Part shown: positions 30,303 to 63,958 of the stretch, in pieces
Position numbering within the stretch: position 1 is the first letter of the stretch
Layout: every line of letters starts with the position of its first letter
Assembly: GCF_021869535.1 (NCBI RefSeq)
Contig: NW_026262581.1
Coordinates: 33,356,001 to 33,420,000 of the forward strand
Reading direction: 5' to 3'
Source: Mytilus californianus
Taxonomy: Eukaryota
DNA length: 64,000 bases
Position numbers and translations under genes: made by a program
Notes under the pieces: generated by a model
The model's input: only the letters and a program-made list of their open reading frames with translations
The model's database searches: none
What the model was told of the DNA's origin: nothing

Positions 30303-30460
30303 CGTAATCATCGTAATCCTCGTAACACGATCCATTGTATGAGTACTTATCTATTATTACTTGTATATGATGTCCGAACGTCTGTTCGAACATTGACTGG
30401 TATTGGTCACAGAATGTGTTTAAATTTTCCGAAATGCATCCCAGTAGATACTTCGTACTC
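30303..30460 (-). CDS. Orphan receptor, Cys-module exon B
   Basis: Acceptor ttcctgtctcttgttag|G, donor G|GTAGGT; 158 nt, phase 2-1. Encodes STKYLLGCISENLNTFCDQYQSMFEQTFGHHIQVIIDKYSYNGSCYEDYDDY. Confidence 0.87.
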
Positions 30461-31497
30461 CTAACAAGAGACAGGAATAACTAAAGCTACATATATAGTT
30501 ACATTTGTAAGCAATTATTCAGGATAAAATAAAGTGAGATATGAGACGCGAAGACATATAATAACAAACCAAAAAAGAAGGTATGGTAAGGCCATTTTAG
30601 TCCATTGAAGTCGGAAATGAAAACATCTTCTAGATCTTTCAAATAATTATTGATTAAGTGCTGCTTGCTTAATGTCCATTGGCAAATATTTCAAACATAT
30701 TCATAACGAGAACTTATAGATTATTAATATATACAGGTACTGTAGGTTCTGCAAGACATGTCGACCAGGATGAAGGCCGGGGAATTTTGATAGATACCGA
30801 TAACGAGGGTAAACTATGTTAGAAAAGGGCACACATTTTGCCTTTCCAACGGATTATGCCTCAGAGAGTTGTTGCAAATGAACCTCTTTAACGTGCACAA
30901 TACGTTGCACTCTAAATTAACGTGGCAGATACTACGTCATATTCCAAGCAGACATGCATCCCACACAGCCAATTGCAAACGGATTCCCGTCCTTAGCAAG
31001 AGTTCTACTTTCGGACGAGATAAGTCCATCAGATGACCATATTCATATATTCAAGTCAGCGCTTGCCTCCTTTATGTATTAGCAAAACACAGGTCTGTAA
31101 GATACTAGTACTGAATAAAATACTAGTATTTTAAAAATTTTATCAGATACTTTACTTGCTATATCGGCATTAAAATTTCTTGAAATATTGGGAAAATAGA
31201 TTTTTAAGCATTAGCCTTACAGGCAGCAATATTTTGGCAGAAAATATCATAAGCTAATTATCGCTATCAAATCTTCCTTCAAAAACTATATTGGTCACAG
31301 ATGTCCCTATCACAGATTTTCATTAAAAATTTGGTCAAAGAAAAGGCGAGAGTTTTTACAAGGAAAAAGGGTTCTTATAAACTTCTTACATAATGACTAC
31401 ATTGCTAAGCACTAACATGTTGACATGAGTAAAATATCGCTAAAAGGTAAGAAGAATTTTACTATTTCATCAAATCACGGGGTCTAATCATGTATAT

Positions 31498-33703
31498 TAC
31501 GGAAGCGTATTAGCGCCACACAATTTTTATTTTATAATTTTCTTCCTATCAGTTTGTGATATAACGCAAACCTTTGCGAAATAACGCAAACCTTTGCGTT
31601 ATAACGCAAACCTTTTGATTTCAATTATTCATTAAGTTTTGTATATACATCTGTATGTCCGTCTGTCATTAAATTTCTGTTGTGATTTAGTTAGGAAAAA
31701 GAACCATAAATACAAGGCAAAGTCATTATAATAAATATGAATTGGAATCAGAAAAGTATATAATTTAACAAGAAAATAAATATGCTATAGGCATATTTTA
31801 TTTGAAAGGCCAACATTTTTAAAATTTTGATTAAGTAGATAAGAGCAAAAGTAATGTTATACAATTGTAAAACTGTCAAGTCAAATAGACAAAATAATCT
31901 TTCTGCTGTAAAATGAATTATCAAGAAAGAATTTTTTTTTTTAATTTTGATGTAAGAAATCGTTTTTTAAAATCTCAGAATATGATAAAGATTCTTTGAT
32001 AAAAAGTCATGAAATTTTCAATTTAGTGTGGTAACTTGGAAGCAATTTAAATGGAGAGAACATAATTTTATTAATAAAACATCTTCATTTTATTCATTAA
32101 TGCAAAAGGGTAGTTAACCAACCTTACACAATCCTCAAACGAGAACTTACTTTGGAAGTGTATTTATATTCGGCTATAGCTATATTAGCAGGGTTGTTTT
32201 TTTTTCTTCGGTGTAACTTTAATTTACTCAATTTTCATTATATTAATATATGTACATGTATTATCATGTATACCATTTTGGGGGCACTTTATAGCTTGAT
32301 GTTCGGTGTGAGCCAATGTTCCGTGTTGAAGACCGTACTTTGACCTATAATGGTTTACTTTTACCAATTATGACTTAGATGGAGAGATTTCTCATCGGCA
32401 CTCATACCGCATCTTCTTATATCTATTATCCTGCTCATTATTAGTTAAATAGTAAAGCATTTTACTTTGCAATGAGTACAAAGAAGATACATTTATATAT
32501 GCAGCCTCCTCCATTAATAACTGCTGCTTCCTTTGAATCTTAAATAAGAAATAAGATAAAACAAATGTTTGCGTTATATCGCAAAGGTTTGCGTTGTAAT
32601 AATAATAATAATAATAATATCTTTATTTAGAGAGAGTAACTTATTTGGATTACACCAATTTTCAATACGGCTCTCTTAATACAATAATAATTACATTAAA
32701 TATAAACAATACATATTCAATAATAATGATAAATAAAGATGTAATACAATTTAAATACAATAAACAATTATTATATATGGCATTACAGTACAAATATCAT
32801 GGTAATGTTAAAAGTGCATAGATTCGTAGTTATGTTTAAATTTTAATACTGTGTTTGATTTTTTAATTGAATTAGGAAGAGCATTCCATACTTTTGGTCC
32901 ATTGTACGAGAAACTTGACTTATACAACTCTGTATTTGGTTTTGGAATTATAAAATTATATGAGGACGAAAATCTCGTATTGTATTTTTAGTTTGCAGAA
33001 GCTGATAAAATAAGACTGGGCATACATTCTGGAGCTAAGCCATGTTTTGCCTTATACATTGGTAATGATTTATGATAATGTATTCTTTGTGTAATCGGCA
33101 CTATGTTACATTCGTTAAATAATTCGCTTGAAGGTTTGGTGTAATCATGTTCGTCTAAAATTATTCTTGCTGCCCTTTTTTGCAGTTTTAGTAAACTATC
33201 TGATAGAAAGTTATTACAGTTTCCCCATATTGAACAACAATAATCTAAGTGAGGTAAAACGTAAGCGTTGTAGAACATTTGTCTAGTTTTGTGATTTAAA
33301 TATTTCTTTATCCTTTTTAGTAAAGCTAAAGAAGAGTTAACTCTTTTTATGATATAATCAATATGAGAAGACTAAGATAGAGATGCATCAACAAAAATAC
33401 CTAGAACCTTTTCACATGTACTTTCTTTAATTTGTTGTCCATTCATAGCAATATTAATGTTTTCATTTGATGGAGCTGAAAGCTTCTGTTTAGAGCCAAA
33501 ACATATAGCCTTCGTTTTAGATACATTTACAGCCATTTTATTATTTTAAAATGTTTGCGTTATTTCGCAAACGTTTGCGTTGTAACGCAAAGGTTTGCGT
33601 TATTTTTGCAAATATTTGCGTTATAACGCAAAAGGTTTGCGTCATAACGCAAACGTAGGAAGAAATATAAAAAAAAGTTGTGTGGCGCTAATACGCTTCC
33701 GTA
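31498..33703. mobile_element. Non-autonomous TIR transposon, TAC..GTA termini, 6-bp TSD (IS3EU-like)
   Basis: TIR TACGGAAGCGTATTAGCGCCACACAA at both ends; GTATAT at 31492-31497 and 33704-33709; subterminal ATAACGCAAACCTTTGCG arrays. Confidence 0.85.
32598..33540 (-). mobile_element. 5'-truncated CR1/L2-type LINE (RT C-terminal part, pseudogenised) with (TTA)n tail
   Basis: KMAVNVSKTKAICFGSKQK...EKVLGIFVDASLS*SSHIDYI...YNAYVLPHLDYCCSIWG...LQKRAARIIL, then after a frameshift KSSFSYNGPKVWNALP. One in-frame stop; (AAT)n on the plus strand at 32598-32618. Confidence 0.92.
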
Positions 33704-33772
33704 GTATATCGTGGCACAATTGAGTCTTTTGTTGTTATACAATTCAGATCCTCATATATAGCTATGACCTAC

Positions 33773-33887
33773 CAACAAATATCATCATCTCTGGTGAGTG
33801 CATTTACATCATGATATATTTCTGGATAAAAAGTCATATCCATACATGTTAACGCCTCCAAACAACACCATGTAGCTGTATATGAGT
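33773..33887 (-). CDS. Orphan receptor, Cys-module exon A
   Basis: Acceptor atttctttattctag|AC, donor TG|GTAGGT; 115 nt, phase 1-2. Encodes SYTATWCCLEALTCMDMTFYPEIYHDVNALTRDDDIC(W). Confidence 0.85.
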
Positions 33888-34371
33888 CTAGAATAAAGAA
33901 ATATAATAATAAAATCCCCCTAATCTTAAAATCACATATGATTTTCACTAGCCAAGACTGCCGAAGAAGATACCCGATTTGTGGATCGTCCATTGATTGT
34001 TGCATTTTGGTCAGAACTTTTTTTTAAATTTGAATAACATATATTAACATAATCCATTCAAAGAGTGTTATTTTCTATTCATTTGTAGAAGTAGTTTAAC
34101 ACATTTTTCTTATCTCTTTATCCATTTAAGTGTGCTTTAATTTGTAAATAGTTTGTCAGTTTATAGATAATAATGTTACAATATGAAGTCAACCAAATTC
34201 AAGTTCAAGATCAACATCAACATTTCAATTAGTTTCTAACTTATTGACTAAGGATGTGATTTGTTCCTTAGAACATTTGATAAAATGTATTAGTCCTATC
34301 GTGCGTTATAAGTTTTGAATAAAAGTAGGAATTTCAAAATATTCAATCTGTTGTCAGTATAAAAATAAGAA

Positions 34372-34720
34372 AACGTGATATGATTGCCAATGAGACAACT
34401 CTCCACAAGAGACCAAATGACTTAGAAATTAACAACTATAGGTCACCATACGGCCTTCAACAATGATTAAAACCTATCCCGCCTAAGTCAACTATAAAAG
34501 GCCCCGAAATTTGCTCATAATAACTCTACTTATCATGCTTATGAAATTCATATTTCAATTTCCTTTAATTTCGGGACCTTTTATAGCTTGCTATGCAGTA
34601 TTGGTTTGCTAATTGTTGAAGGCCGTACGGTAACCTAAAGTTATCAACTTCTACGTTATTTGGTCCCTGATGGAGATGGCTTATTGGCTCTCAAACCACA
34701 CCTTCTTAATTCTATATAGG
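34372..34720. mobile_element. Tail-to-tail pair of the most abundant interspersed element in the window
   Basis: ATGATTGCCAATGAGACAACTCTCCACAAGAGACCAAATGAC...GGTCACCATACGGCCTTCAACAATG...TATAAAAGGCCCCGA followed by its inverted copy. Further copies near 1130-1290, 6590-6670, 7000-7225, 11045-11135, 16040-16350, 24900-25220, 29600-29770, 32270-32430, 50630-50720 and 55890-56030. Confidence 0.85.
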
Positions 34721-35093
34721 AACGAATTTTATAAAAAATCTAATTTGAATTTAGTACAATTTGTAGATTTCATGCAAGTCATAACTCTATCACATTTTAA
34801 AAAGTCAAAAAGAACTTCATCTTCTCACCTCCTGATGAAACATGTACATGCAACCCGACTACAAGACTTTTATATGGTTACGGATGCGTACTGAATTATA
34901 TTATTTTGAAAAATGAACCCTTTGAAGAAGTGATCGACCGGAGAACGAAGACTTTTGGCCACACAAATAATGTTGAACTAAGTCCTTTCTTAAACTTAAA
35001 TATAAGTTAAACGATAAAATTAAGTAAAAAACTTAATGTTGTTGCAAATAATAAAAAAAGTAATTGAAAAAAGATATCTCTTTAAAGTCTTAC

Positions 35094-35187
35094 CGTTATA
35101 AAACCATGCACATGCAACCTCCGAATTAGAAAGAAATTCCAAAGCTTTAATCACGGTTTCGTTACCATACATCTTTTTAAGAATACT
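35094..35187 (-). CDS. Candidate upstream exon of the orphan receptor
   Basis: Strong donor G|GTAAGA in the needed phase 1. Open frame ILKKMYGNETVIKALEFLSNSEVACAWFYN after ctaac...aaaatag, or from an ATG at 35172. No signal peptide, so the 5' end stays unresolved. Confidence 0.45.
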
Positions 35188-36550
35188 ATTTTATAAAATG
35201 TTAGCTTTAATTTCAATTAAAACCATAGCCCAAAACCGACAATAAAAAGATAAAATGATTTAATAAGATTGTATCAAAATTTTTCACTTATCAACGTCAT
35301 AAATCAATTGTTGTTCTGTGCGGTCAAGCGTTACCGTGCTGGTCTGTTGTTTAAAGTGAAATCAAGAAGGCTGTACTTGAATAATATGTATCCTGGTTAA
35401 AATGGACTATTGAGTTTGAATTATATTGATAACGTTTCACGGGATATTTGACTTTTCTTATTTTTGAAAGCTTCGGGCATTTTAAATACTTTTACATGTT
35501 TATTCATACCTTCCGAATTGGTCCATCGCCAAATCCTATACGCGCAGTATAAAAACACCGTTGAAAATTCGTCATTTGATTTGAATTAAAGATAAATAAC
35601 ATTGCAAGGCTCGCAAATCGTACCCATTATTGAGTATGAACAAGTGTATTAAAATGTGCGTTATTGATAGGCTTATTCCTTATTTGTTGTTAAACTTTTA
35701 AAGTTTCCAACAGTCATGTTTAGGTTTGAAGAACCATATCGTTTGATGGTGTCAGCATTGACGTTACAGATTATTTTTTGTTCATATTGGAACTATTTCA
35801 TTATGGAATCAGTGGACAGAGTTTAAAATGGCTTTCCAATTTAACATTAATTTGAGAGGTATTATGCTCAGACAATTTTACGTTTTCTGGAGAAGAAACA
35901 TGAGCAAGATTATATCATTATTACTTGAAAAGATTTTAGTTTCAAAGGTAAAACCAAAAAAAAAAACAAAGGAAAACCGTATTTCAAGTTTGGGTTGAAA
36001 AATGTTCCAGAAGGAAATAATCTATGAGTTTGATTAAGTGATTCAAAATTATGGCTCATACATAGACAATATGAAAGGCAGCTTTTTTAAATTTGCATCT
36101 CATTTATTTTTATTGACAAATTTGATTTAGTAAATGAGGAAACACGTCGCTTTGAAACCGTGACCATTTCTTTTATGATGCAGCTTTGGCACTTGATTAT
36201 GAAACAGTTTGTGTAACTGAATATAGTGGCAACAATAGGACTTGTTCTGACATGTAAATTTGTACAGGTTTTGAGATATTGTCTAAAATCGTAAAAAAAA
36301 GATCGGAAATGTCGGAGAAAACGTAAACAAAAGAAGTATTTCAAATGTAGTCAGATGAGTCATGTACGAGTAAAATGTCATCAAAAGGTGGTAAAAGTCA
36401 ATATTGATGCTCAAAAGTCTGCTGCTTCCGGTAGTATTTATAAGTTTTCAGAAGCGGAAGTTTTGATTTTTTTACGATTAAGAAGGACTGGCATACTGAA
36501 AAATACAATCACTGACCTTACTGCATTTTCTAAAGGTTTTATTTCATTGT

Positions 36551-36552
<2 letters not shown>

Positions 36553-36597
<45 letters not shown>
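36553..36597. repeat. (TG)n microsatellite
   Basis: About 22 TG units. Confidence 0.98.
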
Positions 36598-36603
<6 letters not shown>

Positions 36604-37374
36604 TTGTTATTTGATAACAAATTGTGTTCTCTTCTTTTACGACAACTGAAATGTGCTTCATGTATGAGTATAAACTGTCCCACAAATTATGCTCTTATTT
36701 GGGTTATTTTTATGAATAATACTGCTTTAACGCTTTATCTGTAGGAAGATGTATAGAATATCGAATAGTTATTATAGTTTGAATTGTTTTTTTTTTTTTT
36801 TTTTGGTTCTGACTCATTGGTCTAAAGTTGTAATCTCCAACTTGATATGTTGAGTTTAGTGAGATTATGGAGGTCTGACTGTTAGTGACTTTTGTTAGTG
36901 ATGGTAGAAAGCAATTGTTTGTAATATATTGAAGTTTGGAATGTGTCGTGCTCCTTCAGAACGTAGCACATAGATTGACCCGATCCATCTCAAGTTGAAC
37001 AATGCTTCGTTTCTTTTATAACAACGTTGAAGTCCTAAACCCGATGGTATATGTCAAACGTATCTATACCATCATGAAAACTACACTCAGTCTGGATTAT
37101 ACTCTCGGTATGCACTTAATCTATAACGCTTTGGATGCACCAAATTGACAAAGTGTTATTTTTAGTTTTAAGAAGTTCCCTTCTAAGATTTAAAAAAATA
37201 TTTAACTCTTATGCATTTTAGATGTGAGTTTATGAATTATAGATGATAACAAATATAGATATCGTTAAATTGGACAACAAATTTAAATACATAGTTATCC
37301 TAAAAAACAGAAGAGTTACAAAGTATTATGGAAAAGTTTAAAACCTGGAAAACGTGAGAAACAAACATTTATAA

Positions 37375-37682
37375 GAGGGTCGTAATGGGGATACCTTCAT
37401 GACGAATAACGGTAAAAATTCTTGCCAAATGACGTTAACGGTAATTTTTGGTGCATGACGATAAAATGTACAATTTCTTTTAGACGATAAAAAAATCAAC
37501 TGATTTTGACGAATCACGCTAATTTTTTTCCAAAAATAACGGTAACGATAATAATTTGAGACCTCTGATGAATCACGATAAGTATATTTTGACGAATCAC
37601 GGTAAAAATTTAACCAATTTGACGCTAACGGTAGCCGAAAATGACCGTTTGACGCCTGACGGTAAAGGGCATTACTACCCTC
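37375..37682. mobile_element. MITE with GAGGGT..ACCCTC termini and internal TGACGAATCACG repeats
   Basis: TIR GAGGGT(C/A)GTAATG, TTATAA on both sides; many internal TGACG..ACGGTAA motifs. Confidence 0.8.
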
Positions 37683-38592
37683 TTATAATATTGGCAATAT
37701 AAACTATCTGGGTCGATTCGGGAAGGGCGCACTTCACTCCCTCGCTTCACCGCCTAAAATTGGAAAAAATATCACGCCCCCACTCACCCCAAATTTGGAT
37801 CCCGGCTGCTGAACTCTCCGCCTCTTTTGATTTCTTTGTATAACATTTTAGATACAATTCTATTTAAAAAAAGTAAGATTTATCAACAAATTTATTAACG
37901 AAGACGTTATATATTTTGTTGTTCATTCAAGCTTAACCGTACTGGTCAGTTGTTAAGAATCATACATAGACCACTGCGCTTTAATTACAAAATTTCACGG
38001 ATGTTGCATTTTAACATGTTTTCCTTATAAAAGCTTCGGGCATTAAAGTTGTCCTCCATGTGTAAACATTTCAACTCATTTCTTTTTATCTAAGTTTCAT
38101 GGCGATCAAAGTCCAAGTCTAGTACATGCAGTATAAATACACCATTGAAAATTCATTGTCTGATTTTAAATCACAGCGAGTAACATTCAATTTTACACTT
38201 TTCGCAACTGATCCTTACATTAAGAATGATCTTGCAAATGATTATAATCCCCGTCATAGATTTTTGTTTGTCGCTGCAAAACTTTTATTCTATTTATGCG
38301 CGGATAGAAGGTTTGTTTACGGAATACAAACTCCCTTGCATCATGTTTCACTTTTGCAATATTAAATCAAATGATGAAATTCTAGCGGTGCACATAACAC
38401 GTTCTTGTGAAGGTGACCATGTGCAGCGTTAATAGTGATAGAAATTTGGGCGTTGGACAGCAGGTGACTATTTCAACTAGAGACTCTCAGGAGCCTGAAT
38501 CGCTCACCTGAAATTTTTTAGACAATTGAAATAATACATTAAGAATATTTTCGATAGTTATTGGCAAAAAAGTTTCAAATGAGTAACAATTG

Positions 38593-38722
38593 TCATTCAA
38601 GAGCAATGAATCCGATACTATTAGTCGACTGATAACATCGACCTCGTATATTTAATGGTAGATATTGTCCCGCTGATAATTGTTGTTGCCTGTCAAGTTT
38701 CTCTTTATCTTCTATAGTTTCC
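38593..38722 (-). CDS. Possible orphan exon
   Basis: Strong acceptor (ctaat...tttatgttttttttccag|GAA). Only phase 0 is open: ETIEDKEKLDRQQQLSAGQYLPLNIRGRCYQSTNSIGFIALE*. No partner exon confirmed. Confidence 0.3.
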
Positions 38723-40310
38723 TGGAAAAAAAACATAAAAATTAGTAAAAAACGTCTTTCAAGGACAATCATTCCTATCAGGTCTCGACGGATGGTTTTT
38801 GCCATGTTGTCTTATTTGTAAATCTTGTTCTGATTGTATTTTTTGCTATAAACAGGTTCTCTCTCTGTCTACTTTATAGTTTATGAGTGGGTTTTTTTTT
38901 AGACCTGGTACTGCTCATCATTTTTATTATTCATTGTTTCACTTTATTTATATTTATAATGGCTAAAATTTCAAAATTGCACAAATTGGTAAAAATCGTC
39001 ATTCAAGGACAATAACTATAAGTTTTGTCAAAATGGACGGTAGGTAGATCTTGATATTTGGAATATTTCTGCCCTGTAAGATTTTTTCTATCTAGAACGG
39101 TTTTAAAGATAGATTATGCTTTCGATTTACCCCCTTGTTATATTTTAGCCTTTGAGGCCATGGCAAACATTTCAAGCATATACACTCTCTGACACATGTC
39201 AATGAAGTGATTCATATAGAATTTGCTTGCCTTATCGTTTGTTCTCTGTTAACATGTTACCAAACATTTGTTCCGGATAGGATAATTTTGTCTATGAAAA
39301 CGGTGTGGAAGCACATACTTGTCTGCCTCTGTGTAGCTACAGACACTGATCGTGGGTTTTCGCTTCTAACTGTATAATCTTACTAAACGATATAAAGCCT
39401 TTTCATACAAGTACATTGTATATCATAGGATTTGTAACCAAAGTAATGGGACAACAATTTTATTGTCTTGGGGATGGGTGCAGGATAAATTGAAAATGAA
39501 TTCTTGGCCTGGAAAGAGCTAAAAATCAAATAACCTTGCATAAGGTAGGATGAAAATAAATCTTCTGCAACACAAAATGCATGCAGTGGTGGACAAAAGT
39601 GAAAATAAAGTTTCGCATGGTAATGCCACAGGAAAAAAAAACAAGGATCCTTGAGTAGCAACAGATGAAAACAAATAGGCAATCCACAAAAAATCCTCCT
39701 GCCCCTCCCCCTAGAATATCAAATGGTCGTTCCATAAATGAACTTCACGAATCGCCGAACAGTTTTAACAAGACGACAGACACCGTTTACTTAACTAGTC
39801 AAAGGGAGGCAAATCAAATGAAAATCCTCACTAACATTCAAGATTCAAGATAAAAAATCACCACAACCATCCGAGACATTTATTTTTTCGATTCTACGAC
39901 GAAACCGTGAGAGAAATATCAATATAATTATATTTTTCATAAAAAAAAAATGAACGACCGCCAAATATTGGAAAATGAACAAAGGTGCTGCATCATGTAG
40001 AATTAGAAGTTCAATGAAAATTACAATTTATTTTTGGAACGGTTTTGGAAATAAACTAAGAACCTACAGAAAATTTACAATAAAGTATGAACTTGAAAAG
40101 TATCTTTTATTGAAACTTTACAATGAATGATGAAAGAACTCTTGACTATATGGTTCTTTTGCAAACTGATGAATATTGCAAACTAAGTAGAATCAAATTC
40201 ATAACAGTGTGGACGAGACCATTAGTTGGTGCGCTCAATTCTCCAATTGACTGGATTAGATTAGGTAACCGTTTGTCTGTTACGCCTACTTACATTTGTA
40301 ATACGTATTA

Positions 40311-40460
40311 GATACAATACAAAGGTAACAAAGAAAGAGGCCGGTTACAACTGTTGCCGGATAGTTTTTCTGCACGAGTAGTCAGGTGAAGGTCCGAGGC
40401 CTGACTACAAGTGCAGAAGTTTGTTTCCGGTCTGTTTTTTTGTTACCTTTGTTTTGTATC
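40311..40460. mobile_element. 150-bp foldback (hairpin) element
   Basis: GATACAATACAAAGGTAACA / TGTTACCTTTGTTTTGTATC and TGCACGAGTAGTCAGG / CCTGACTACAAGTGCA arms. Confidence 0.75.
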
Positions 40461-42254: not shown

Positions 42255-42320
42255 GTGTCTAAGCGGGGAAACGAACTCAAGACCTTTAGCATATGAAGCC
42301 ACGATTCATACCCCTACATC
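42255..42320 (-). mobile_element. tRNA-derived SINE head remnant
   Basis: Minus strand GAGTTCGTTTCCCCGC, a B-box-like motif; no complete cloverleaf. Similar remnant at about 58826-58885 (GGGTTCGACCC). Confidence 0.4.
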
Positions 42321-43585: not shown

Positions 43586-46568
43586 TGTACTTAATTGTTA
43601 TTTCATGGATCGAATTGAAAGAAAAATGGAGGTTCATTAAAGATGAAGGATCATGAAAGAGGAGGGATCATGAAAGAGGAAGGATCATGAAAGAGGAGGG
43701 GTCATGAACATTCACAAAAATAGTTTAAACCTGTAATATACAAATACTTGTGTTAAAATAGGGAGATGTGGTATGATTGCTAATTGGCAACTATATCCCA
43801 CCAGAGACCAAAATAATGTGAATGTAAAAGTCCATGATAGAGTTGTGTGTCTGTTCCAAAGCAGGAACCTCGACAGCTGCTGTTTTTATCAATTTTTTAT
43901 TTAGAATTTTCATGGTCGGTCTTTGATCGTCTCTATTGTTAGAGTTCACAAGGTGTTTAGCCGAAGGGCGATTATGAGGTTAATATCAGATAGACATAAT
44001 CGGCTATTGATGAATACTTATTTTCAATCTATAGATGGTTTTCTTGTTGTTGAATCGTATGTCCTTGTTGATACACACCCTTCATCTCCCTTTGATGATA
44101 CACAAATTCATGTTTAATTTATCTTAGATACTGACTGAATTGTTTGTTTTATACCCCCACCATCGTCAACCACCCTGCTCGCTCTCTGTATAGCATTGAA
44201 AGTGTTCGTCATTCCGTTCTCCCTTCCTATAATCTTTTGTACCCTATACTACTTCTAAACCGCATTTTGCATAGCATTATCCAAATAACTTTAAGGGTTT
44301 ATTTTTGCATGACATGTACTTTGTCATATCCACACACTACAGTAATTAATTGAATCCGCGTCTCCTCTTTTAACTCCCAATAACAATTAACTGAAACTTT
44401 CTAACAAGCCTTATCATATAATGCCATCGTGCTCCTCTTTTTTTGTTTTTTGATCCGAATTATTTTTGAGGATTTCCAATCACGAGTTTAGGTCTTTAAA
44501 GTGATTAGGTGCTATTTTGTGAGCATTCTCTTTAGTTATGTATGCGATTGATTCTAACAAATTGATACAGCTTACACTTCCGGAGCACCTGAGATCAACC
44601 CCGTTTTTTTGGTGGGGTTCGTGTTGCTCAGTCTTTAAGATTTCTATGTTGTATTTGTGTTTTATATATTGTTTTTTTGTCTTTTCGTCGTTTTTCGTTT
44701 TTTGCCATGGCATTGTCAGTTTGTTTTCGACTTATGAGTTTGAACGTCTCTTTGGTATCTTTCGCCTCTCTTTTGACCTGCAGTGTAATATCCGATAGAA
44801 CATGTTTCATTGAGTAATTTTAAAAAGCATGGAAAAATCCATACATATTAGTTTTTTCAAATTTTGTTTTCGAAAAGATCAATTCAATGATTTCTTAAAA
44901 AAGCTGTCCGTGTTGAATTGTTCAGAAAGCATTTTTTTTTTAGAAAAGTAATGTCAATAATATAACACTTTGTTAGTTTGCTAATTTTTGTGCTAGCAAA
45001 TCCTAATTCATGTCTTTGGTTTTTTTTTTTTTTTTGGTTTTTTATTAAAGTTTGTATAAAACCAATTTCAATAGGTAGGAAACCAATATATAGGAACAAA
45101 TTATATTGAAGTGACCTGGTGATAGCTGCGGGATCTACAAATGTACATCTATAGTGTGCATAAAAGGGTTTTGCTTGATAGAAAAGTTGATAAAATATAC
45201 AAGCCCTGGGAAATCCTTTTTAGGAAAATAATTATAGTGAATATATATAGTCCAGATAAAACTTTAAAGTCGCATGAACAAACTATGTGAAACAGACTTG
45301 TGGACAGAGCCAGCTTCTGTTGAAATAGACATGCATTATCCGTCACGTGATTTTATTCATATTCAGAAGACAGAGACGATCACAGGTATTTGCTTTCCAA
45401 AAAGCTTGTCTAAATATAGCATCTTTAGATTTTAAACACAAGTTCGTTTGTAAGTGTTAGTTTAGCATATATTTGTAACTTCAGTTAAGGTGGGCTTACA
45501 TTGATCTTTCTAATTTGGTTGTTATTGTCATGTTACGTTACGAAAATTAAAAATATGAAATATGGAATCTAGGTAAATATATGATTTACAACAGATACCT
45601 GTGAAATAATGGAATTTACTGAAATATGATATTGGAGATGTCCTTTCGGTTCATTAGTTGTTTTTGTCATGCTTATCTCTGTTGGTTATTTTTTCATTTA
45701 TCGTATAACATTAGATGATATTTCTTTGTAAACTTTTAGAAGATTATGTTAGACAAACTCTGTTCCTATTTTGACATTAACCACAAAAAGTTTACTTCGT
45801 TGAACAATCGGTATTTCCGTGTTTTATTTGAAGGGGATAAAGTAATTAAATGGTCACATTGTACTATTTCTATTATTTCATTTGGTAATATCAAGTCAAT
45901 ATAGTGCTACTACAAGTGGTTTTATTTTTGTTCATCAGTCACTTAAAACGAAAACAAACCAAAAACAAATACAAATTCTCGAAGGAGCATTTTTTTTCAA
46001 TTTTAAGGATATTTGTAACAGACTGAGTGTTAAAAGTAGTTTAAATTATAAATAGATTCTTTAATGATCAAAGTCCAATATGTTTACCAATTTTTGATTA
46101 CAGAAACATATACAGGTAAATTGGCCAACTGTATTTATTTGGAACAAAACATCTAGCTGATTTAGGATATAGAGTTTATTAACACTTTTACTAAAAGACA
46201 TTGAATTCTTACAATTCTTTCAAACAACATAAACAAAAAACCTAGGTGCATTGTGCATGTAAACATAATAAAATCGATAGTTAGAACTAATATCATAGTT
46301 GTATATAATAGTCAATATGTTTCATACGTATTCTTTAACTCTTGTAAATCTATTTTTACGTATAAAACTTTTATATAAAATAAGGGAAGTAATTGTAAAT
46401 TCGAAAGGTATGATGCTTCATTTTTCATCTCGAAAGTGATGATTTCATGAAATAAATAATGAATTTGTTATTTAATTTCCTTTGATACATTTGCAATCGG
46501 TTGATTCACAAATAGCATGAAATACATAGAATTACCTGCAAACTTCAAAATACTTTCAATACCCAAAA

Positions 46569-46835
46569 ATGTATTTGTGGAAAAATGTTTGGTATGTAAG
46601 CCGAACAGGTAGTACGTTAAGTGTTAGCAAACTGGAAATTGAACTGGTTCACTGCCCAATTTGTATACAACAACTCAGTCAATATAGTGAAATGGTTTGT
46701 ATAAATATGAACACAAAGTGTGTTCATATATATCATGAACACTGTATAAAACAGTGGATAGCTGCCTGCAGAGGTAGACAACAAACACCTACATGTCCTC
46801 AATGTAGACGACCATGGGAAAGTATAGCATGCTAG
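46569..46835 (+). CDS. RING-H2 (C3H2C3) zinc-finger ORF, possibly a pseudogene or element-borne fragment
   Basis: C-x2-C-x18-C-x-H-x2-H-x2-C-x16-C-x2-C, with the conserved Trp (CIKQW) and terminal CPQCR. Isolated, with stop-containing frames upstream. Confidence 0.7.
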   Translation: MYLWKNVWYVSRTGSTLSVSKLEIELVHCPICIQQLSQYSEMVCINMNTKCVHIYHEHCIKQWIAACRGRQQTPTCPQCRRPWESIAC

Positions 46836-52113: not shown

Positions 52114-52460
52114 TTTATCACATATTTTACAATTTTAGTAGTATCAATCCCTGTATGATGACAAAGTTCAGGTGTGATTATGACCCGTGTATATGCAAAT
52201 CCCAAATACACCGGTAGGTGGTGCGGCTGACAGAATCAGGTAACAGGTAACAGGTACTATTGGTATAAGTATCGGATTCGACCCGGAACTTGTTAATTTT
52301 TTGTAATATTAATTATATGGAAAACAAATGAGCCTGGGATGGTGTAATTTTAACACCATTGTCCTATATTAGTTATATATAAAGTTGAATTCTTTGATTC
52401 GTCGTTTTAACGTCATGCCGGCTAACAAATTTGACCTTGTTATTTTAGAAGTATAGTTAA

Positions 52461-54129: not shown

Positions 54130-55785
54130 TTAACGCTTCCCATTTTACCATAACAAGGTTTTGGAAAATTAATTCTTAGTATTAAGTAATAAATTATGAC
54201 CATAGTTTCCGGTACAGGATACGACTTAATCATGATATTACTTCTATCATTTCTTATGTTGTGCTCTTATTCGTTTCAGCGACTATAGAAAAATTCTGAT
54301 TAACTATCCAAATAGGATTTTTCTGTGCAAAGGGAGTTAAATGGGATTCACTTTATATCAAATTCCTCTAGCGTACGAGTCCCGGGATTACTCTGTAAAT
54401 GAAAATTTATTTTAATACCATTTTTTTTTACAGTCACTGTGTGATATTTATTCATGATGAAAGAACTTCAATGATTTAAACTGTAAAAGGTTTCAATAGG
54501 TTTCCGTTAAACTTCATGTACAGTTCACATTGGCCAGAAGATAAACTTTCTGAGTAAATAAGTCCCAAAATGTAATAATTTACCTGATCGATTTACACTA
54601 CATGCAAACCCTAGGAATATTTAACGGAATTAAGTCTATGCAATTCCATTTAATAAGTAATGGGGAGGGGAATCATGTCATACTATGAAAATCTACAATC
54701 ATTCCTAATTTCATAGTTATGAATATAAAATAATCTTCGTACGAAAGTTCGTCTTTCACATTTTTCACAGCCACCCTAAAATTACACTAAAGAAGTATTA
54801 AACTTTAAGTATTAAATGCATAAAATGAACTTTCAGCTAGCAGTCTGGATTTTCTTCTCTTTTAAACTTTGAAATTCTTTCTCTTTTGAGAGGGTGTTGG
54901 AGGTTCAGTTTTCACATTTTGTTAATTTCTTACATAGTTTTTATTCATTAAAATGCATTTGGTCAATTTGGACACCGCCAGTATTTATTTCGTTCACTGC
55001 ATAAATGTTTAATTCAAAGCAGAACGGGTTTTTTATTTCTAAAAACCATATGAAAAGAGATGCGAAAGATATCAAAGGTACATTAAAACTCATAAATCGA
55101 AAATAAACTGACAACGACATAACACAAAATAGAAAACCAAAGACTGTTTCTTAATAATCATGTAAGCTCAACATTGAGATTTCAAGAACGTGCACGCGAC
55201 AGTATGGCAACTAAAATAGTATACTTTAGTACATTCAATTAATCTAAGTAATCAAACAAGCCCTTCTATGCAGATTTAAATGATCATATTTCTTCACGGC
55301 AGAAATTCGATGCATTGTGGAAGTTTGGCGCCTGTTTTGTAATTATAATCTATGTTGACACCATTTCTTAAGGGAGCGTAGCTATAATCCGAAGGGCTCA
55401 TTTGATTACTTCGATTGAATTTTCGGTGCGGAAGTGTGACACGTGTGCTATTTATCGTTTTTTATGAGGTTGCTCAGTTGACGTATATAACATGAATCAA
55501 AAAAAAAAAAGGAAAATGACCTCTTTTTAAAATGATAAAAATCCATTTATGTTCAAAGAGAATATCTATCTCTAAAATGATATGAAACTGTTTCTGTAAT
55601 GTTAAATATATCCAGTAATTTCCCTTAAATAAAAGATCAAACTAACAACCTTCATTTATTCACGAATAAGTTCTTCAGATAAGAACATTGTATAAGAAAT
55701 TTTGGTACAAGTATTACTCACTTATGATAAACCACGAATTTCTGATTGTCATCTCACAGAGGACACACTTTGTTTAACACCAGAA

Positions 55786-55842
55786 ATGAAACCGGACTAT
55801 CTAACGATTATTTGTGTATTAGTCTACCTTAATTATGTTACG
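55786..55842 (+). CDS. Secreted/membrane Cys-module protein, exon 1 (signal peptide)
   Basis: MKPDYLTIICVLVYLNYVT, then ACG|GTAAGG (phase 0). Hydrophobic h-region. Confidence 0.7.
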
Positions 55843-58800
55843 GTAAGGCATCTTGCTTATTTATCTAGTCTTGTAATAGAATGAAAAGATGTCGTATGAT
55901 TGCAAATGTGACAACTGTCCAATAGAGTCCAAATGGTGCGGATTTATTCAACTGCATGTACTAGTATAAGTCACAGTGCAGCCTTAAACAATGAACAAAC
56001 CCAACACCGTAAAGTCAGATATAAAGGGCGTCGACATTAATTTGTTTTGTACTTTAAGTAAAAAAAAGTGCTGTAGAAGATCTTAAATTTTCAAAACTAA
56101 CTTTTGTGTCTGATAGTAGTCTGCATTTTTCAATCGGCAATCGATTCAATAACCATAATGTCTAGCTTGCAATGGTTATTCTCTGTATTTCTAATTCGAT
56201 TTGGTCTGTCAACTGGCGTCATCAATACCATTGGTCAATTAAACAGATGCAAATACAGGCGGAAACCTAGTTGAAATAGAACAAAAGAATCGAAGCTCTT
56301 TGTCAGAGAAGGCGATAAATGATTACTGTAATGTTTACTGTAGTAACACACATTTTAAAAGTTAATAGAAACAAATAAAATGACAGTTTTTTTGCTAAAT
56401 TACGAAATATTTTATCATAAAAACACAATTTGCATAAGTTTTCAATTTATCTATTACATAATTAAGCAGAACAATTAGATATCAAGTCGACGACATGGGT
56501 GTCTATTAAGTTGGATCTAAAAAATGCATAACCTCCGATTTTTCAAAAAAATTTACCACGGACGGAGAACATATCAATCTATTTGTTCCTTAATTTTCGT
56601 TTCTGCCCTTCCATTATGTGACTCAAGAAAAAATTCCCAAAAATGGGTAACAATTGCATCGAAAAGACAAAATCGAGTGCACCTTTTTATGTTAGGGCGT
56701 GTTTGCGTTGAATATTTTGTCTTGAAAACGTAAAAAGCAAAAGTATTTGATACATCATCTCGCTTCAGATTCTATCATTTTTATATATCAAGGCAACAGG
56801 TTGACTTTATAACATCGAAAATTCACAGTAGTAAAAAAATGAAATATATAGGTCAAGTGAAATACCTTTCTAATGAATCACAAAAACAGAGTAGGTGTGT
56901 TCGAATAGCAAATATTTACTAAAAGTACTTGACGACAGACTTTTAAGTTGAATCTTAAAAATGCATATCTTCGAAAAAACTTCATTTTTTGTGTGTGATA
57001 TCTAGGGTTTATAGTCTTCAACGACTGAACATTTTTAGTCTGCCCTTCCACGAAATATTGAATTAGATTTTTTTTAAATGTTTATGAATTTTCGAAAATT
57101 CCACCTGACAACCGATCAGACAATAGTTTTAAGTTGACTGAATGCTCATTAGCTAGTAGATACATTTGTCTTTTAAAATACAACTGGCATATAAGGATCG
57201 TAATGGTGCTATGCGGATAAATTTATCGGTTTTCAAGAGCTAAATTGGCAGCGCGTCATCCCTACAATGGCTTCCATTTTTACGATTGTAAAAATGAACT
57301 GGCGTAATGGGGAGATAATTTTGACGAAGTAGAATCCTGACTGAATAGATATACAAGAAAGTAAGCAAATAAAGATTAACTGTTTGGTACTAAATTATTC
57401 TTTAGATCGCTGCAATCTCAAATAAAAAAAAGATGTGGGGTACAAACCAATGAGACAGCTACCCGACTACACAGAAACAAAAACAAAGTTAACAAACGAT
57501 TTAAAAAATTATTATAGACGTCTTATATTGCTTGATAGCTGATTAAAGTAACAGGCATAAGTAGGAGAAAAATATAAATAATAGGACAATGTGGTGGTAG
57601 GTATACAAACCCAAAGACATACAGCGCTTATCATTCAGTTTTAACCATATAAAAGTGTAATGGAAGGACACCACTAAGTCATCGCCCCTTTGCTTTCTAT
57701 GTTAAATTCTTTAATTTCAAACAGTCACAAACTGTTGTTGTCTTAAGTTAAAATAAATTGAAAGTCATGATTGCATGTCAAAGCAACACCTTATGATGAC
57801 TTGTACTGAAAAAAGCAACATACCTTTAATTGCATATAAGAGAGAACTGGTTCTCGGAAATTCGTAATTTACCGAAACAGGTACTTCAGATCCAAGAAAC
57901 AGGCAAAATGTACCCTCCTTTTAAAATTTCATACATTTTTTTTATTACTCAAAATTATAATTCAAAAAAGTGTTCTACAATTATCACCAATCATTCAGCT
58001 TTCATTTGATACCAAAATTACCAAAACACCTCCGGGTGTGGGATTTTCTCGCTGCGTTGGAGACCCATTGGTGGCCTTCGGCTGTTGTCTGCTCTTTGGT
58101 CGGGTTGTTGTCTCTTTGACATATTCCCCATTTCCATTCTCAATTTTACATATTTTGAAAGTGACACCCGTGCGTAGGATGTTTTAGATACGTTCTTCTT
58201 TCTGGTATGTTCTTTCAGACCCGGTCCGAATTAGTGGTGTTAACCAAGCACTAAAAAGTCAAAATCCAAAGCGTCTGTGAATAAAATTTAAGAGAGACAA
58301 CCAAAGATTTACGATCAACAGTACTTAATTCTTGAAAGCATGATACAAAATTTAGAACATAATAATATACATGATTGTTAAACTGACGCCAAGTCCGATT
58401 GACGAGATTCAAGACAAAGAAAAGGCACATTGATAAGTTGCGGAATCATTATTTGGTTTTTAAATCCTGATCAGGGGAAATAACAGAGGGAGCATAAAAG
58501 AATATAAACCCTGACTTGAGGTAGATTCTAATATAACGCTCTTCTCGAAAGAATCTAGTCGTATTCTAATTCCAACAAAAAACACACAATAAGTCATGCT
58601 AGACGTCACATTTGAATATGTATCACGTAATTGGTATTTGACCGACGCTAGAGATCAAAATACATTTCTGTGCGAGTCGCACACTGTATACTTTGAACAG
58701 AACCCTAAACGAGTTGGTCTATATATGAACAACTAAAGAGGCGAAACACTTGGATTTTAGAAAAATTTTGGCTTCATTAAATCAAAATGGTGGCATATCG

Positions 58801-58997
58801 TAAATAGTTGGTTTACAGTTATTGGTTTGTCCCAGCAAGGGTCGAACCCACGACCTTCTAAATCTTACACTCGAGGCGAGAATGCAAATACATGTAGCAA
58901 CAACATCGTGGCAGCTCTTTATCATAAATATAAAGTTTTGATCGTATACATGTACTGCTATATGTAAGACTGAATTTTACTTTTTGCATTTTTCCAG

Positions 58998-59013
58998 AGA
59001 GAAGTAACTGCTA
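58998..59013 (+). CDS. Cys-module protein, 16-nt microexon 2 (end of signal peptide)
   Basis: tttttgcatttttccag|AGAGAAGTAACTGCTA|gtaagt, phase 0-1. Adds REVTA, giving V(-3)-x-A(-1) before IDAC. Confidence 0.72.
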
Positions 59014-59944
59014 GTAAGTATCTTTGCATTTTGGTCTTTCTTCTCTTGTTTATCTTTGCATCCTTGTCTGCATAGTAAAATTTGAAACGGTCATTGATCA
59101 AGGCACGATGATATTACTTTTTTTAATTTCTTCTGAGCCAAAAGTTATATCATCTATGTGAGGTAATTAGTTGAAATCGCCGTATGCACACTATTTTGTA
59201 TGAAGAGTTCAACTTGCAAGTCATACAAAATGTGTTTCTGTCAATTTTACTACAAAAAAATGCCAGCATTATTATAAGTTACATTAAATTGGACATTGCA
59301 AATGCTTCCATACGTCTTTGTATACATTTTCAACTGTTCACTGTCTCACTTTTACCATTTTGAATTATTTGAAACATGGAGATTTTACCCCATTAGCATT
59401 AATTCCTTAGCCGTGTTTGGCACAACTTTTTTGAATTTTCTGTTTTAATGCGTTTCAACTTCGTATCTTGCCTTCCAGCTAGTTTGATTCACGATCAACT
59501 AATGAGTCTTATTTAGGCGAAACGCGCGTCTGGCTTGACATTCAGTAAAGACATATTTGGTTTAAATCGGTAACACTGAGCTTATTGTGGGCTTTCGTTA
59601 AATATGAAAAAAATATCACATATAAGAGATATTTCATGATTGAAAATTATTCACGGACTCATTTGTTTGAAAAAAAAAATTAAAGAATGTTAAATATCTT
59701 TTATAGTCACATTTATTTCAGTTCTTTCGAATCTCAGCACGAAAACTGAAATTATATTTTGTCTACATTTTCAAAAGTTCAGATACACATATGAATATGG
59801 CAAACGATGTTCGAGCTCGAATTTTACATTTGTAATGTTAACCATGTTTTCAAATCTTACATGAAATAGTATAGTCTCTACATTATATTCGGCAATTAGG
59901 CAAGAAAACATACCCTGATAACCTGTTGTCATTATATTTTACAG

Positions 59945-60050
59945 TCGATGCGTGCTCGCACATAAGTATCGTTTCCAAATATTCAACCAACTGTATTGGT
60001 ATTCTTGCTGTATTGAATAATACTGTACACACACATACAGATGTTTGCCA
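59945..60050 (+). CDS. Cys-module protein, exon 3 (module 1, A half)
   Basis: tatattttacag|TC ... CA|gtaagt; 106 nt, phase 1-2. Encodes DACSHISIVSKYSTNCIGILAVLNNTVHTHTDVC(Q). Confidence 0.85.
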
Positions 60051-60981
60051 GTAAGTGCAATTAGTATATTAAAAAAAAATAGAAATATGAGTGTTTTACT
60101 TGCGTGACAACTGGAATACATGTGTAAAAAGTGCGGATTTGTTAGCACGTAAAATTTGGTTCACTCACCACTGTAACATTTTGTGAATGTACAGAGGCAT
60201 GCAGGCTTTCTTGATCATATGCTGTTCGTTGTTCATATTGTCACTAGTGTTCATTTTGTATGTTATTTAGGTTGGAGTTGTCTTTTGTAGTAGCTGTCTG
60301 TAATGTTATTTGTAAATACTATCAGTTTTTTTACTTATGTCTGTGACCTTGAATGTAACCTCACTTTTACTAGCATTTGAAAGAGAAAATCATATTGGTA
60401 TAGTAAGGGGCTCTTGTATAGCAAATTTTCAGTTCAAATAGGTATTTTGACCTAAATTAATATTATAACTTTCTCAAGCGGAGTTGATAAAGGTTTGGCT
60501 GTTATATTAGAAGACGTTTTTGTCTTGAACTCCAAAATTGATAATGAACTCCACTCTCCAAACTATTGTATTTTATGAGTGTTCATCGATTTTAATTGAT
60601 TCAAAAATAATTTTTTTTAGAGAGTTTCTGTAATTTCCTGCTGTAAATTATATCCCCTAACACATGTAGCATGAAAGTACAAATTTCTAAGAAACTCAAT
60701 GTTGGATTGAAGATTACGTACACGGCATATTAACCACATAGACGAAAACCATTTCATAAGTAAAGTTGCAATATTGGCATAATTTTTATTAAAATAGCGT
60801 ATACGGTAGGATAAACTGATGAATAAATAGACGAGCACAACAGCAGCTGAAAATCAGATCATGATAAAACACATTTATGAAATAAGGCTGACCTACACGA
60901 ACTTTTAAAAATTAAAGGCGAATAAATGTAACCTGATAAGAAGGATATAAGACTCGTGACAATGTATTTTTATTTATTAAG

Positions 60982-61133
60982 GATATACAATGAAGTTGGT
61001 AGATGTATTCAATTACTTGCTGTTAAAAATGGCGAAACATGTGACATGCAGAGTCTTCATGCCACGTTTACCAAGATGGCGACATATTATAACGATGATT
61101 GGTTGACTGCAATGGACACACAATCTTGTCAAT
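60982..61133 (+). CDS. Cys-module protein, exon 4 (module 1, B half)
   Basis: tttttatttattaag|G ... T|gtaaga; 152 nt, phase 2-1. Encodes IYNEVGRCIQLLAVKNGETCDMQSLHATFTKMATYYNDDWLTAMDTQSCQ. Confidence 0.85.
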
Positions 61134-62035
61134 GTAAGAATATTATTACATAATTAATCTCAAATATATGACCCAAGGAGCATGTGCCAGTCTACAAGCA
61201 TCGCCTTGCATTTTTGCATAAAATTGAGTTATTGCAATGCAATAAGAAAAGAAACTGTATGGACCAAATTCTTATCTTGCTGATTATTTTTGCAGGTTGA
61301 TTTTTAGTCTACTTACAGACATTATTTTAGAGTTTTCAAAAAAATAGGATACAGCCGAAAGTGGTTAAATTTGCGACCAACATCTGTTACTATTCGGTTG
61401 ACCATTTGGCTTCTGAGTAGATCTTGTATTGCTGTTCACTTTTGCCATCTAACTTCTATAGCTTTATGCTATAAGGCACAAAACTATGAACTTGCCAAAT
61501 ATTACTTAGATATTTTTTTATTTTTTCAACCGCAATAAAACCAGAAAACAAAATAAAACAAGCCCCCTTCCCCCAAAAAGCAACGTTAAGGAATTCATAT
61601 TACTAAGTGGCATTTATACAACTTAATAAGAAAATAACTCTAAAGCAGTCACGATAATTATAAAAACCTCCTTAATCAGTCCGCACGGAAACATAATACT
61701 CAAAAAGTATAACCGACCCGTGACCCTGAAGGTAACTCCCGACGGACACGGTCAAATTCTGCTGAGTTTTGTCTGACTATATGCTTAAAATATTCTAACA
61801 GTAGCAATTTGGATCCATTCAACTGTTAGTCTTAAAAAATGTTTACGATATAAATTAAGTTATTTTGTGAAGGTTTTTTTTAGCAATGAAACAAGTACAT
61901 TACATCTGTATTCACGTTATCTCTGTTATCTATTATTTGTAAATCATGAGCTTTCAACATTTGCATCTGGTATTGATTCGAATTATATCGGTTGTTTGTG
62001 CGGTGTGATACTAATAATATGAACTTGTTTTACAG

Positions 62036-62156
62036 TAGAAGAACTTACTGAATCCTTGTGTACATCTCCTGATCGTCTTGGACTGGTATCTGCTATTGGT
62101 TGCTTTCCTCCTATCATTGGAGGATCCATGCAACATTCCAACTATTATATTTGTTC
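62036..62156 (+). CDS. Cys-module protein, exon 5 (module 2, A half)
   Basis: cttgttttacag|TA ... TC|gtaagt; 121 nt, phase 1-2. Encodes EELTESLCTSPDRLGLVSAIGCFPPIIGGSMQHSNYYIC(S). Confidence 0.87.
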
Positions 62157-62334
62157 GTAAGTTTTTCTTTCTTTTCTAGTATTTTTTATTACCAAATGGT
62201 GGTAACCTATTGTGATCAATCAGTCGATGGAATGCATTTTAGACTCTACATAATTGATTAGACCTGTATTATTCCTTGGTTTGTAGCAATGAAAAACCAA
62301 GTATACATAAGTTTACTGTGCGTATTGCTGTGTG

Positions 62335-62630
62335 TTTGTTTATTCTACATTGGCTAGATGTATTGGCGGAGGGTTGAGATCTCACAAAACATGTTTAACC
62401 CCGCCGCATTTTTGCGCCTGTCCCTAGTCAGGAGCCTCTGGCCTTTGTGAGTCTTGTATGTTTTTTATAAGTTTGGTTCATTTATATGTTTCGGAGTTTA
62501 GTGTGACGTCCATTTTCGCCGAACTAGCACACGCTGTGTTGAAGACCCATTGGTGGCCTTCGGCTGTTTTCTGCTCTTTGGTCGTGTTGTTGTCTCTTTG
62601 ACACATTCCCCGTTTCCATTCTCAATTTTA
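62335..62630 (+). mobile_element. Interspersed non-autonomous element in an intron of the Cys-module gene
   Basis: ...CATGTTTAACCCCGCC...AGTCAGGAGCCT...GAAGACCCATTGGTGGCCTTCGGCTG...CATTCTCAATTTTA. The 3' part recurs at about 58030-58150. Confidence 0.75.
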
Positions 62631-63761
62631 TCAAATCTACTTATTTTTATATGTTCCGTTTTTTTTTATTATTCCACTTTTAGAGTTATGAAATAAGGAT
62701 GAGGATTGAGTACTTTGAGAAGTATCTTCTGATTTATGTGAATAAAATATAATTAAGGAACAATATAACTTTGTCCTTTACTTTTAATGTTCGTCAATTA
62801 GAATAAAAAGAAAGAATCTATTATAAAGAGAAAAAAATATTTGAATACATAAAATCAAAAAGAGATTTCTGTAAGAGAAAACTAACTTATAGGAAAAGCA
62901 AATATATGCTAGCTGTTTTGCGGCATATAATCATGATAATTAGATAGACAAAGAAGAAGGTTTGTCTCGGTGCACATACAACTGGTTTTACCCTACCAAG
63001 TTATCAAGTTCGAATATCTGGACCGTGTGTTTTTCGCTGTTGTTTGTCTTCATTTGAATGTTTATTTTTTCGGATTAGTCAGCTGTTGGTGGTTGAGGTA
63101 GTCTGTTGTATTGTCCATACTTTTTGGTGATTCTTATTTTTCTTTTCATACATTGTATTATATATTTTTCGGTATAATTCAGATATGGCAAATGTAAATG
63201 TACCCCCGATTTACTGTATCCAAAATACGGGGTAAAGAGTACATTTCTGTTTGTAAATTATATCGGTAAATAAATAAATAAAAACTCGTTAAAACTCACC
63301 ATAAGAACGAGTGGCAAAAGAAAAACCTTTAAGGATGTTCGCTCTTCTTGTTTTTGAATTTTACCAGATATTCGTAATCCTTTGGTTTTATACATGTAGT
63401 GCCATTAAAAAAATTTGCCCGCAAACCCCTTCTTTTCTTTTCATAATTTTATTATGTATAGTTTAAAAAGCAAGTTTGGAAAATCTTATAAAATCCTTGT
63501 TATTTTTTCATAGTTTTTGGGAGAAAAAAGGTGCCAATGTTAAATGTATGAAAATTCTGGAGAGAATCACTTCCCGCCAAATTTTCAATGACTTATATCT
63601 CGAAAACAAGCACACGGACCCTTCATTTTTTTCTGCTTTTTTAGTTCCTTTATTCATATACTTTCTATTTATAACAATCTTTTAAAAAGCTTGTTATTTT
63701 GAAACAGAGTAGCGAACATCCTTAAATAGAGCTGTAGTGTATATTTGTTGGGAAATTTCAG

Positions 63762-63958
63762 ATTAGTTTCCAGTTTGGAAGTATGCACAGATCAATTCAC
63801 AAACATGTTGGGTGAAAGCCACTGTCCAGATGCCATAATTAAAGCTGGCCTCCAGTCTTCGACAGCAAAACAGTGGATTCAAGATAATTACCCAACAGTC
63901 AACCTAGATGAATGTTTCAAAGTGTATCAACCAGGTCAATCTGGTGGTGATTCAGAAT
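63762..63958 (+). CDS. Cys-module protein, exon 6 (module 2, B half); gene continues beyond window
   Basis: atttcag|A TTA GTT..., phase 2. Encodes LVSSLEVCTDQFTNMLGESHCPDAIIKAGLQSSTAKQWIQDNYPTVNLDECFKVYQPGQSGGDSE. Phase-1 donors are possible after 63958 (gtaaag) or 63934 (gtcaat); the frame is open to the window end. Confidence 0.82.

Follow-up and report, generated by a model that had tools for sequence, protein, structure and literature searches.

The LU domains of uPAR are cysteine-rich extracellular domains, each encoded by two exons with phase-1 outer borders and multiplied in tandem. They are β-rich three-finger folds, and their cysteine pattern is unlike that of the module described below. 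The nematode DUF19 domain (PF01579; T20D4.11-like) is described as having 12 conserved cysteines, with one or two domains per protein. The extracellular domain of RAMP1 and RAMP2 is held together by three disulfides. DUF19 proteins form a large secreted family in Caenorhabditis elegans, with lengths of 140–220 residues (PMC3534327). The gene considered here lies on the forward (+) strand of a 64,000-nucleotide stretch of the genome of the mussel Mytilus californianus. This stretch (the window) is AT-rich (G+C content 32%) and forms part of contig JAKFGE010000001.1 (assembly GCA_021869535.1). The gene encodes a secreted protein with a signal peptide and four tandem modules of six cysteines, each about 85–90 residues long. 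A head-to-head neighbour on the reverse (−) strand is predicted to encode a receptor-like protein, and contains an exon pair with a similar layout. We consider the forward-strand gene to encode a secreted four-module protein, and the reverse-strand exon pair to be separate and not demonstrable as the same module; the probability that this joint reading is correct is about 0.5.

The forward-strand gene has eight exons, extending from position 55786 to about 66704, and encodes 384 residues; all its splice sites are canonical. The junctions are based on concordant protein models from five Mytilus species and on the public model from the same assembly (P0014), and the mapping was performed by placing P0014 and the M. 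edulis protein (P0001) on a sequence combining the window with the DNA that follows it (locus L002). Exon 1 (55786–55842) carries the start codon and the signal peptide (19 codons), has a GTAAGG donor and ends in phase 0; it displays 93% nucleotide identity to exon 1 of the M. edulis gene. Exon 2 (58998–59013) is a micro-exon of 16 nucleotides encoding REVTA plus one nucleotide (phase 0 to 1), with KEVTAI or REVTAI in the orthologs. Module 1 is encoded by exon 3 (A1, 59945–60050, 106 nucleotides, phase 1 to 2), which carries Cys1–Cys3, and exon 4 (B1, 60982–61133, 152 nucleotides, phase 2 to 1), which carries Cys4–Cys6 and ends with Cys6-Gln plus one nucleotide. Exon 5 (A2, 62036–62156, 121 nucleotides, phase 1 to 2) encodes Cys1–Cys3 of module 2. 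Exon 6 (B2, 63762–64055, 294 nucleotides, phase 2 to 2) runs past the end of the window at 64000 and also encodes, as a fusion, the A half of module 3. The last two exons lie beyond the window: exon 7 (65716–65858) encodes the second half of module 3, and exon 8 (66439–66704) encodes module 4 and the stop codon. The M. edulis ortholog has the same eight exons, of identical lengths, and the fusion of B2 with module 3 is found both in this species and in a metagenome fragment (P0005).

An earlier note on this DNA had described three exon pairs, A1–B1 and A2–B2 on the forward strand and A3–B3 on the reverse strand, as copies of a single cassette. All six exons are present, with canonical AG/GT splice sites. 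For A1, B1, A2, A3 and B3, the coordinates, lengths and phases that it gave agree with the splice sites and frames: these exons have polypyrimidine/AG acceptors, GTAAG or GTAGG donors and phases of 1-2 (A exons) or 2-1 (B exons). The three junction peptides, VCQIYNEVGRC, ICSLVSSLEVC and ICWSTKYLLGC, are exactly as described; in every A exon, the Cys3 codon and two further nucleotides form the 3′ end, and Cys4 follows eight residues further on, giving a C-x8-C pattern across each junction. The splice from B1 to A2 keeps the frame, the orthologous protein models are colinear with A1, B1, A2 and the beginning of B2, and P0014 matches the exons from B1 onwards. The end of B2 had been placed at 63934 or 63958, but there is no intron at either position, and the exon continues into the third module. 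The symmetric phase-1 borders attributed to all three pairs are present in module 1 and in the reverse-strand pair, the only noted pairs with phase 1 on both sides, but not in module 2, which has no phase-1 3′ border. The proposal of an extracellular six-cysteine module carried by a 1-2-1 two-exon cassette in several copies was borne out for the forward-strand gene, although the number of copies, four, had been underestimated.

The protein encoded by this gene belongs to a small family. A search of 1.84 billion proteins with exon B2 as the query recovered P0001, P0006 and two fragments. P0001 is the 384-residue M. edulis protein XP_071168029.1, which is 91% identical to B2 over all 65 residues, whereas P0006, a 369-residue protein from a Logan contig, displays 32% identity and has 24 cysteines (four times six). 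Orthologs have been deposited for M. edulis (XP_071168029.1), M. trossulus (XP_063442720.1), M. galloprovincialis (XP_076112204.1 and A0A8B6DLK9) and M. coruscus (A0A6J8E7Q9). They share the 384-residue four-module layout and are 88–99% identical to each other and 92% identical to the M. californianus protein, with no essential difference between them. The 90% cluster of P0001 contains only Mytilus proteins, all unnamed apart from one UniRef label, and the relatives found in databases for the module, which the earlier note had taken to be ancient, are limited to Mytilus species and three divergent sequences, probably from bivalves. A word-index protein search with exon B2, P0001 and the family alignment as queries retrieved nothing outside this family. 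Hidden Markov models (HMMs) of the family match the exons of the forward-strand gene with E values of 1e-18 to 1e-29. A literature search by the accession numbers of the family and by the run identifier of P0006 yielded no paper. The product is a conserved, uncharacterized secreted Mytilus protein that is unnamed but already in public databases, and the earlier suggestion of a new system is not supported.

The public model of this gene in M. californianus, P0014 (303 residues; 61046–64000 of the window and beyond), is truncated at its 5′ end, because it starts at a methionine within exon B1; it lacks the signal-peptide exon, the micro-exon at 58998–59013 and A1. The eight-exon structure corrects this model. 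A comparison with the M. edulis ortholog gave a dN (nonsynonymous divergence) of 0.044 and a dS (synonymous divergence) of 0.305, corresponding to an omega (dN/dS) of 0.14, with values of 0.09 to 0.16 for individual modules. Within Mytilus, purifying selection acts on this gene. The module had been called fast-evolving, a description that holds only for deep divergence, whether among modules or with respect to P0006.

The contig encoding P0006 (L001, a Logan contig of SRR27896764) has one uninterrupted open reading frame (ORF) after 1.85 kb with no ORF. It may correspond to a messenger RNA with a retained intron or a long leader, or else to an intron-less copy.

The cysteine framework of the family is C-x10-15-C-x12-17-C-x8-9-C-x11-12-C-x23-29-C. 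It is found in all four modules of P0006, in the narrower form C-x12-15-C-x12-17-C-x8-9-C-x11-C-x23-29-C, and in three of the four modules of the Mytilus proteins. In the M. californianus protein, the spacings of module 1 (12-17-8-11-28) and module 2 (13-16-8-12-29) both fit this framework. The exception is module 3 of the Mytilus proteins, which lacks Cys2 and Cys4, both of which are retained in P0006. Since these two cysteines have been lost together, the pattern points to a Cys2–Cys4 disulfide as one of the pairs of the module.

The modules are related to each other to different extents. Module 1 resembles module 3 (hhalign E value of 1e-8) and module 2 resembles module 4 (7e-7), whereas the match between modules 1 and 2 is weak (0.08), albeit in register. 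Pairwise alignments of the three modules of the earlier note remain at shuffle level (z about 0), and the homology of modules 1 and 2 is evident only at family level. The two halves of the protein can be aligned over 12 invariant cysteine columns, with a glycine before Cys5 and, in the odd modules, an NxT motif located between Cys2 and Cys3. From the similarity of module 1 to 3 and of module 2 to 4, it follows that the protein consists of a duplicated two-module unit with 12 cysteines (1-2/3-4). It is most likely to function as an extracellular, N-glycosylated binding scaffold.

Intron positions provide a second record of this history. The phase-2 intron, two nucleotides past the Cys3 codon, is found in three of the four modules (1, 2 and 3). 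Modules 1 and 3 each end in a phase-1 border, placed after Cys6, glutamine and one further nucleotide; modules 2 and 3 adjoin without an intron, and module 4 has no internal one. This pattern is compatible with several rounds of duplication of a 1-2-1 two-exon cassette and the later loss of two introns. The ancestral coding unit would have been a pair of exons with phase-1 outer borders and an intron two nucleotides past the Cys3 codon, multiplied through tandem duplication of the pair. The resulting 12-cysteine unit of two modules would then have been duplicated once, and two introns would have been lost later, one separating module 2 from module 3 and one within module 4. The gene can be seen as a clean and checkable example of a cysteine-rich extracellular repeat protein built from a two-exon cassette, in which intron positions still mark the duplications even though the similarity between modules has almost disappeared. 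Its genomic logic is the same as that of the LU cassette of uPAR, whereas the module itself is predicted to be all-helical.

A short open fragment resembling module 3 from Cys3 to Cys5 (NCKNFFY..., C-x20-C) is present at 24510–24641 of L002 (+ strand), about 11.6 kb past the end of the window. Its score is 15 bits (E value of 0.002 among all fragments), and it may be a relic of a further copy.

The AlphaFold2 models are all-helical for a whole protein of the family (predicted local distance difference test, pLDDT, of 72) and for the two-module unit of P0006 (pLDDT 78, predicted template modelling score 0.74). On these models, each module would be a small helical bundle with three disulfides. 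A Foldseek search of PDB with both models gave no match with an E value below 0.25, and a sequence profile matched no PDB chain. Exhaustive structural alignment (VIA) gave best Z scores of 6.6 and 5.2, to helical bundles only, which lie inside the noise; the stated noise level of the aligner is a Z of 8, and 13 for helical models. The top structural matches included the extracellular domains of RAMP1 and RAMP2 (6umg_r, 3n7p_D, 2xvt_A), which, like a single module, are small helical bundles of similar size, with a Z of 6.5 over 73 residues at 3.1–3.3 Å and a Z of 5.2 over 67 residues at 2.9 Å. These Z scores are in the noise range for helical models, identity is only 8–10%, and RAMP domains are single rather than repeated. 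The likeness to RAMP is a resemblance only, and no structural match is clearly above background. Pfam also gave no match, whether the query was a single exon, a whole family protein or a two-module unit. The domain defined in this way is unnamed, with no Pfam family, no solved relative and no literature, and purifying selection has kept it conserved in mussels.

The 12-cysteine unit may also be a diverged member of the DUF19/T20D4.11-like family, in which case the module would be ancient; the relationship between the two genes of the window has no bearing on this question. One member of the P0001 cluster, P0012 (A0A8B6FRH7), carries the UniRef label "DUF19 domain-containing protein", and the DUF19 proteins of C. 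elegans form a large family that is secreted and cysteine-rich, like the mussel protein. As described, the 12 cysteines and one or two copies of DUF19 would fit the 12 cysteines per unit and two units found here. The unit spans about 175 residues from its first to its last cysteine and does not match the PF01579 model. Scans with complete sequences gave no match to this model at E values up to 10 (P0012 and seven other proteins) or up to 1 (P0001 and P0006), and individual two-module units gave none at E values up to 10. Membership of the DUF19 family appears rather unlikely.

The second exon pair of interest is found on the reverse strand and is predicted only. Exon A3 (33773–33887, − strand, 115 nucleotides, phase 1 to 2) encodes a CC doublet and two further cysteines and ends with a cysteine codon plus two nucleotides; exon B3 (30303–30460, − strand, 158 nucleotides, phase 2 to 1) encodes three cysteines. 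The earlier note considered this pair to be the same cassette as that of the forward-strand gene, and named non-significant profile–profile scores as the result that would refute this view. Such scores were obtained. The hhalign E values for the reverse-strand module are 0.17–0.9 against each single module type, with alignments out of register, and 0.2 against all modules together, a value equalled or bettered by a reversed-sequence control. The family HMMs match neither A3 nor B3 at E values up to 10, and pairwise alignment scores with this module are at shuffle level. Its spacings (5/6-22-8-8-26) fall within the family range at two of five positions: Cys2 is displaced by about six residues, and eight residues separate Cys4 from Cys5, versus an invariant 11–12 in the family. 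If Cys2–Cys4 is the family disulfide, then the shift of Cys2 argues for a different pairing in this module. The NxT motif, the glycine before Cys5 and the W..NYP..NL motif of the family are all absent.

Several observations nevertheless weigh against treating the two modules as separate, and would be expected if the ectodomain of the reverse-strand gene were a true but very diverged copy, moved between neighbours by duplication or shuffling of a phase-1 symmetric cassette and serving both a secreted protein and a membrane receptor. The reverse-strand pair has the same 1-2-1 phases, with the intron exactly two nucleotides past the third cysteine, and intron positions usually outlast sequence similarity. 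Its junction, DDIC|x8-C, shares the ending of an acidic residue, isoleucine or valine, and cysteine with the TDVC|x8-C and EDIC|x8-C of the family. The distance from Cys1 to Cys3 (28–29 residues, 28–30 in the family) and that from Cys5 to Cys6 (26 residues, 23–29 in the family) also agree, and the two genes are head-to-head neighbours, 20.6 kb apart. Against an HMM of all modules, the reverse-strand module scores 6.8 bits, with a z of 2.3 over shuffles in which the cysteines were kept fixed (p about 0.02) and Cys3–Cys4 in register. Furthermore, the odd and even modules of the forward-strand protein, which are surely homologous, score no better on each other's profiles, and the negative profile test of the reverse-strand module therefore has little power. 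True homology of the two modules is given a little less than an even chance, because this specific coincidence of introns has to be weighed against the spacing mismatches; the fuller scenario, in which a copied cassette serves both a secreted protein and a receptor, is possible but somewhat more doubtful. We lean slightly towards the view that the reverse-strand pair copies the layout of the cassette and is either unrelated to it or so diverged that it can no longer be regarded as the same one. The clustered family of receptors and secreted proteins envisaged in the earlier note is reduced to one secreted gene and one unproven look-alike.

The gene to which A3 and B3 are assigned is predicted from six consecutive exons with an open frame, canonical sites and compatible phases, and the best-splice product has 326 residues. 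All these exons are on the reverse strand. The predicted exon 1 (35094–35172) encodes 26 codons plus one nucleotide, with a weak signal peptide, and precedes A3 and B3. Exon 4 (29073–29235, phase 1 to 2) encodes a short stalk, a transmembrane helix and an RSKRK stop-transfer sequence, exon 5 (27718–27808) encodes cytoplasmic sequence with VDYAEI, and the last exon (25716–26090) encodes a tyrosine-rich tail, with its stop codon at 25716–25718. After the transmembrane helix, VDYAEI resembles an immunoreceptor tyrosine-based inhibitory motif (ITIM), and YAEI-x10-YVKL, across an exon junction, has the spacing of an immunoreceptor tyrosine-based activation motif (ITAM); YDGL and YTTL are also present. 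The tail matches the consensus motifs of immune-type receptors (S/I/V/LxYxxI/V/L for ITIM; YxxL/I-x6-12-YxxL/I for ITAM) at the level of motifs only. The product is, thus, predicted to be a separate single-pass membrane protein, with a cysteine-rich outer part of roughly 90 residues and a tail with ITIM- and ITAM-like tyrosine motifs.

The exon pair might also lie outside any working gene, as a mis-prediction or part of a decaying locus, in which case its likeness to the cassette would have no biological meaning. RNA depth is zero on all the exons of this gene inside 29200–35199 (one raw RNA run, 6% of which was read, and three contig sets), although a single sample cannot prove silence. The first exon is poor as a signal peptide and no better candidate was found within 8 kb. 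The A3–B3 intron, 3.3 kb long, contains a reverse-transcriptase fragment from a retrotransposon lacking long terminal repeats (32811–33375, − strand), with low-level RNA reads and contigs with many mismatches. In M. edulis, no ortholog of the gene was found within the 10 kb that precede the ortholog of the forward-strand gene; orthologs were also sought via the neighbouring bHLH gene, but its 90% cluster has only one member. This explanation nevertheless appears very unlikely, given that the six exons are in frame and in a logical order (ectodomain, transmembrane helix, basic stop-transfer, tail) and that the public annotation contains a 287-residue product on the reverse strand with the same stop codon, a length that many exon combinations could give.

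The most far-reaching interpretation would be that the head-to-head genes are a lineage-specific pair sharing one helical six-cysteine module by exon-cassette shuffling, one encoding a secreted four-module protein and the other a single-module receptor with ITIM/ITAM-like motifs. Such a pair would suggest a ligand- or decoy-and-receptor system with an undescribed fold, but the probability of this is very low. If the reverse-strand gene did share the module, the locus would become a candidate invertebrate pair of a receptor and its soluble partner. As it stands, with the forward-strand gene encoding a four-module protein and the reverse-strand pair kept separate, the result is a solid annotation of modest general interest.

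Other features of the window were recorded. Read and contig coverage of the 29200–35199 region is on repeats only. Short repeats at 29600–29799, 32200–32399 and 34200–34599 have a very high depth of RNA reads and contigs, with many chimeric joints between them, and look like abundant transcribed pieces of mobile elements rather than exons of the reverse-strand gene. The small word shares of three runs (X1–X3) were rejected as a sign of expression, because these runs pile up on repeats. A (GT)n microsatellite at 36560–36593 can be translated as repeated Val-Cys codons, which generated false "VC plus GT donor" candidates in the exon scan. Between the two genes, an open fragment on the forward strand (46530–46832) has a RING-H2-like pattern of cysteines and histidines (C-x2-C ... 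C-x-H-x2-H-x2-C ... C-x2-C). The bHLH gene mentioned above, which is included in the public annotation, is a single-exon ORF of 341 residues on the forward strand (18479–19504), the sole member of its 90%-identity cluster, and matches the HLH family of Pfam.

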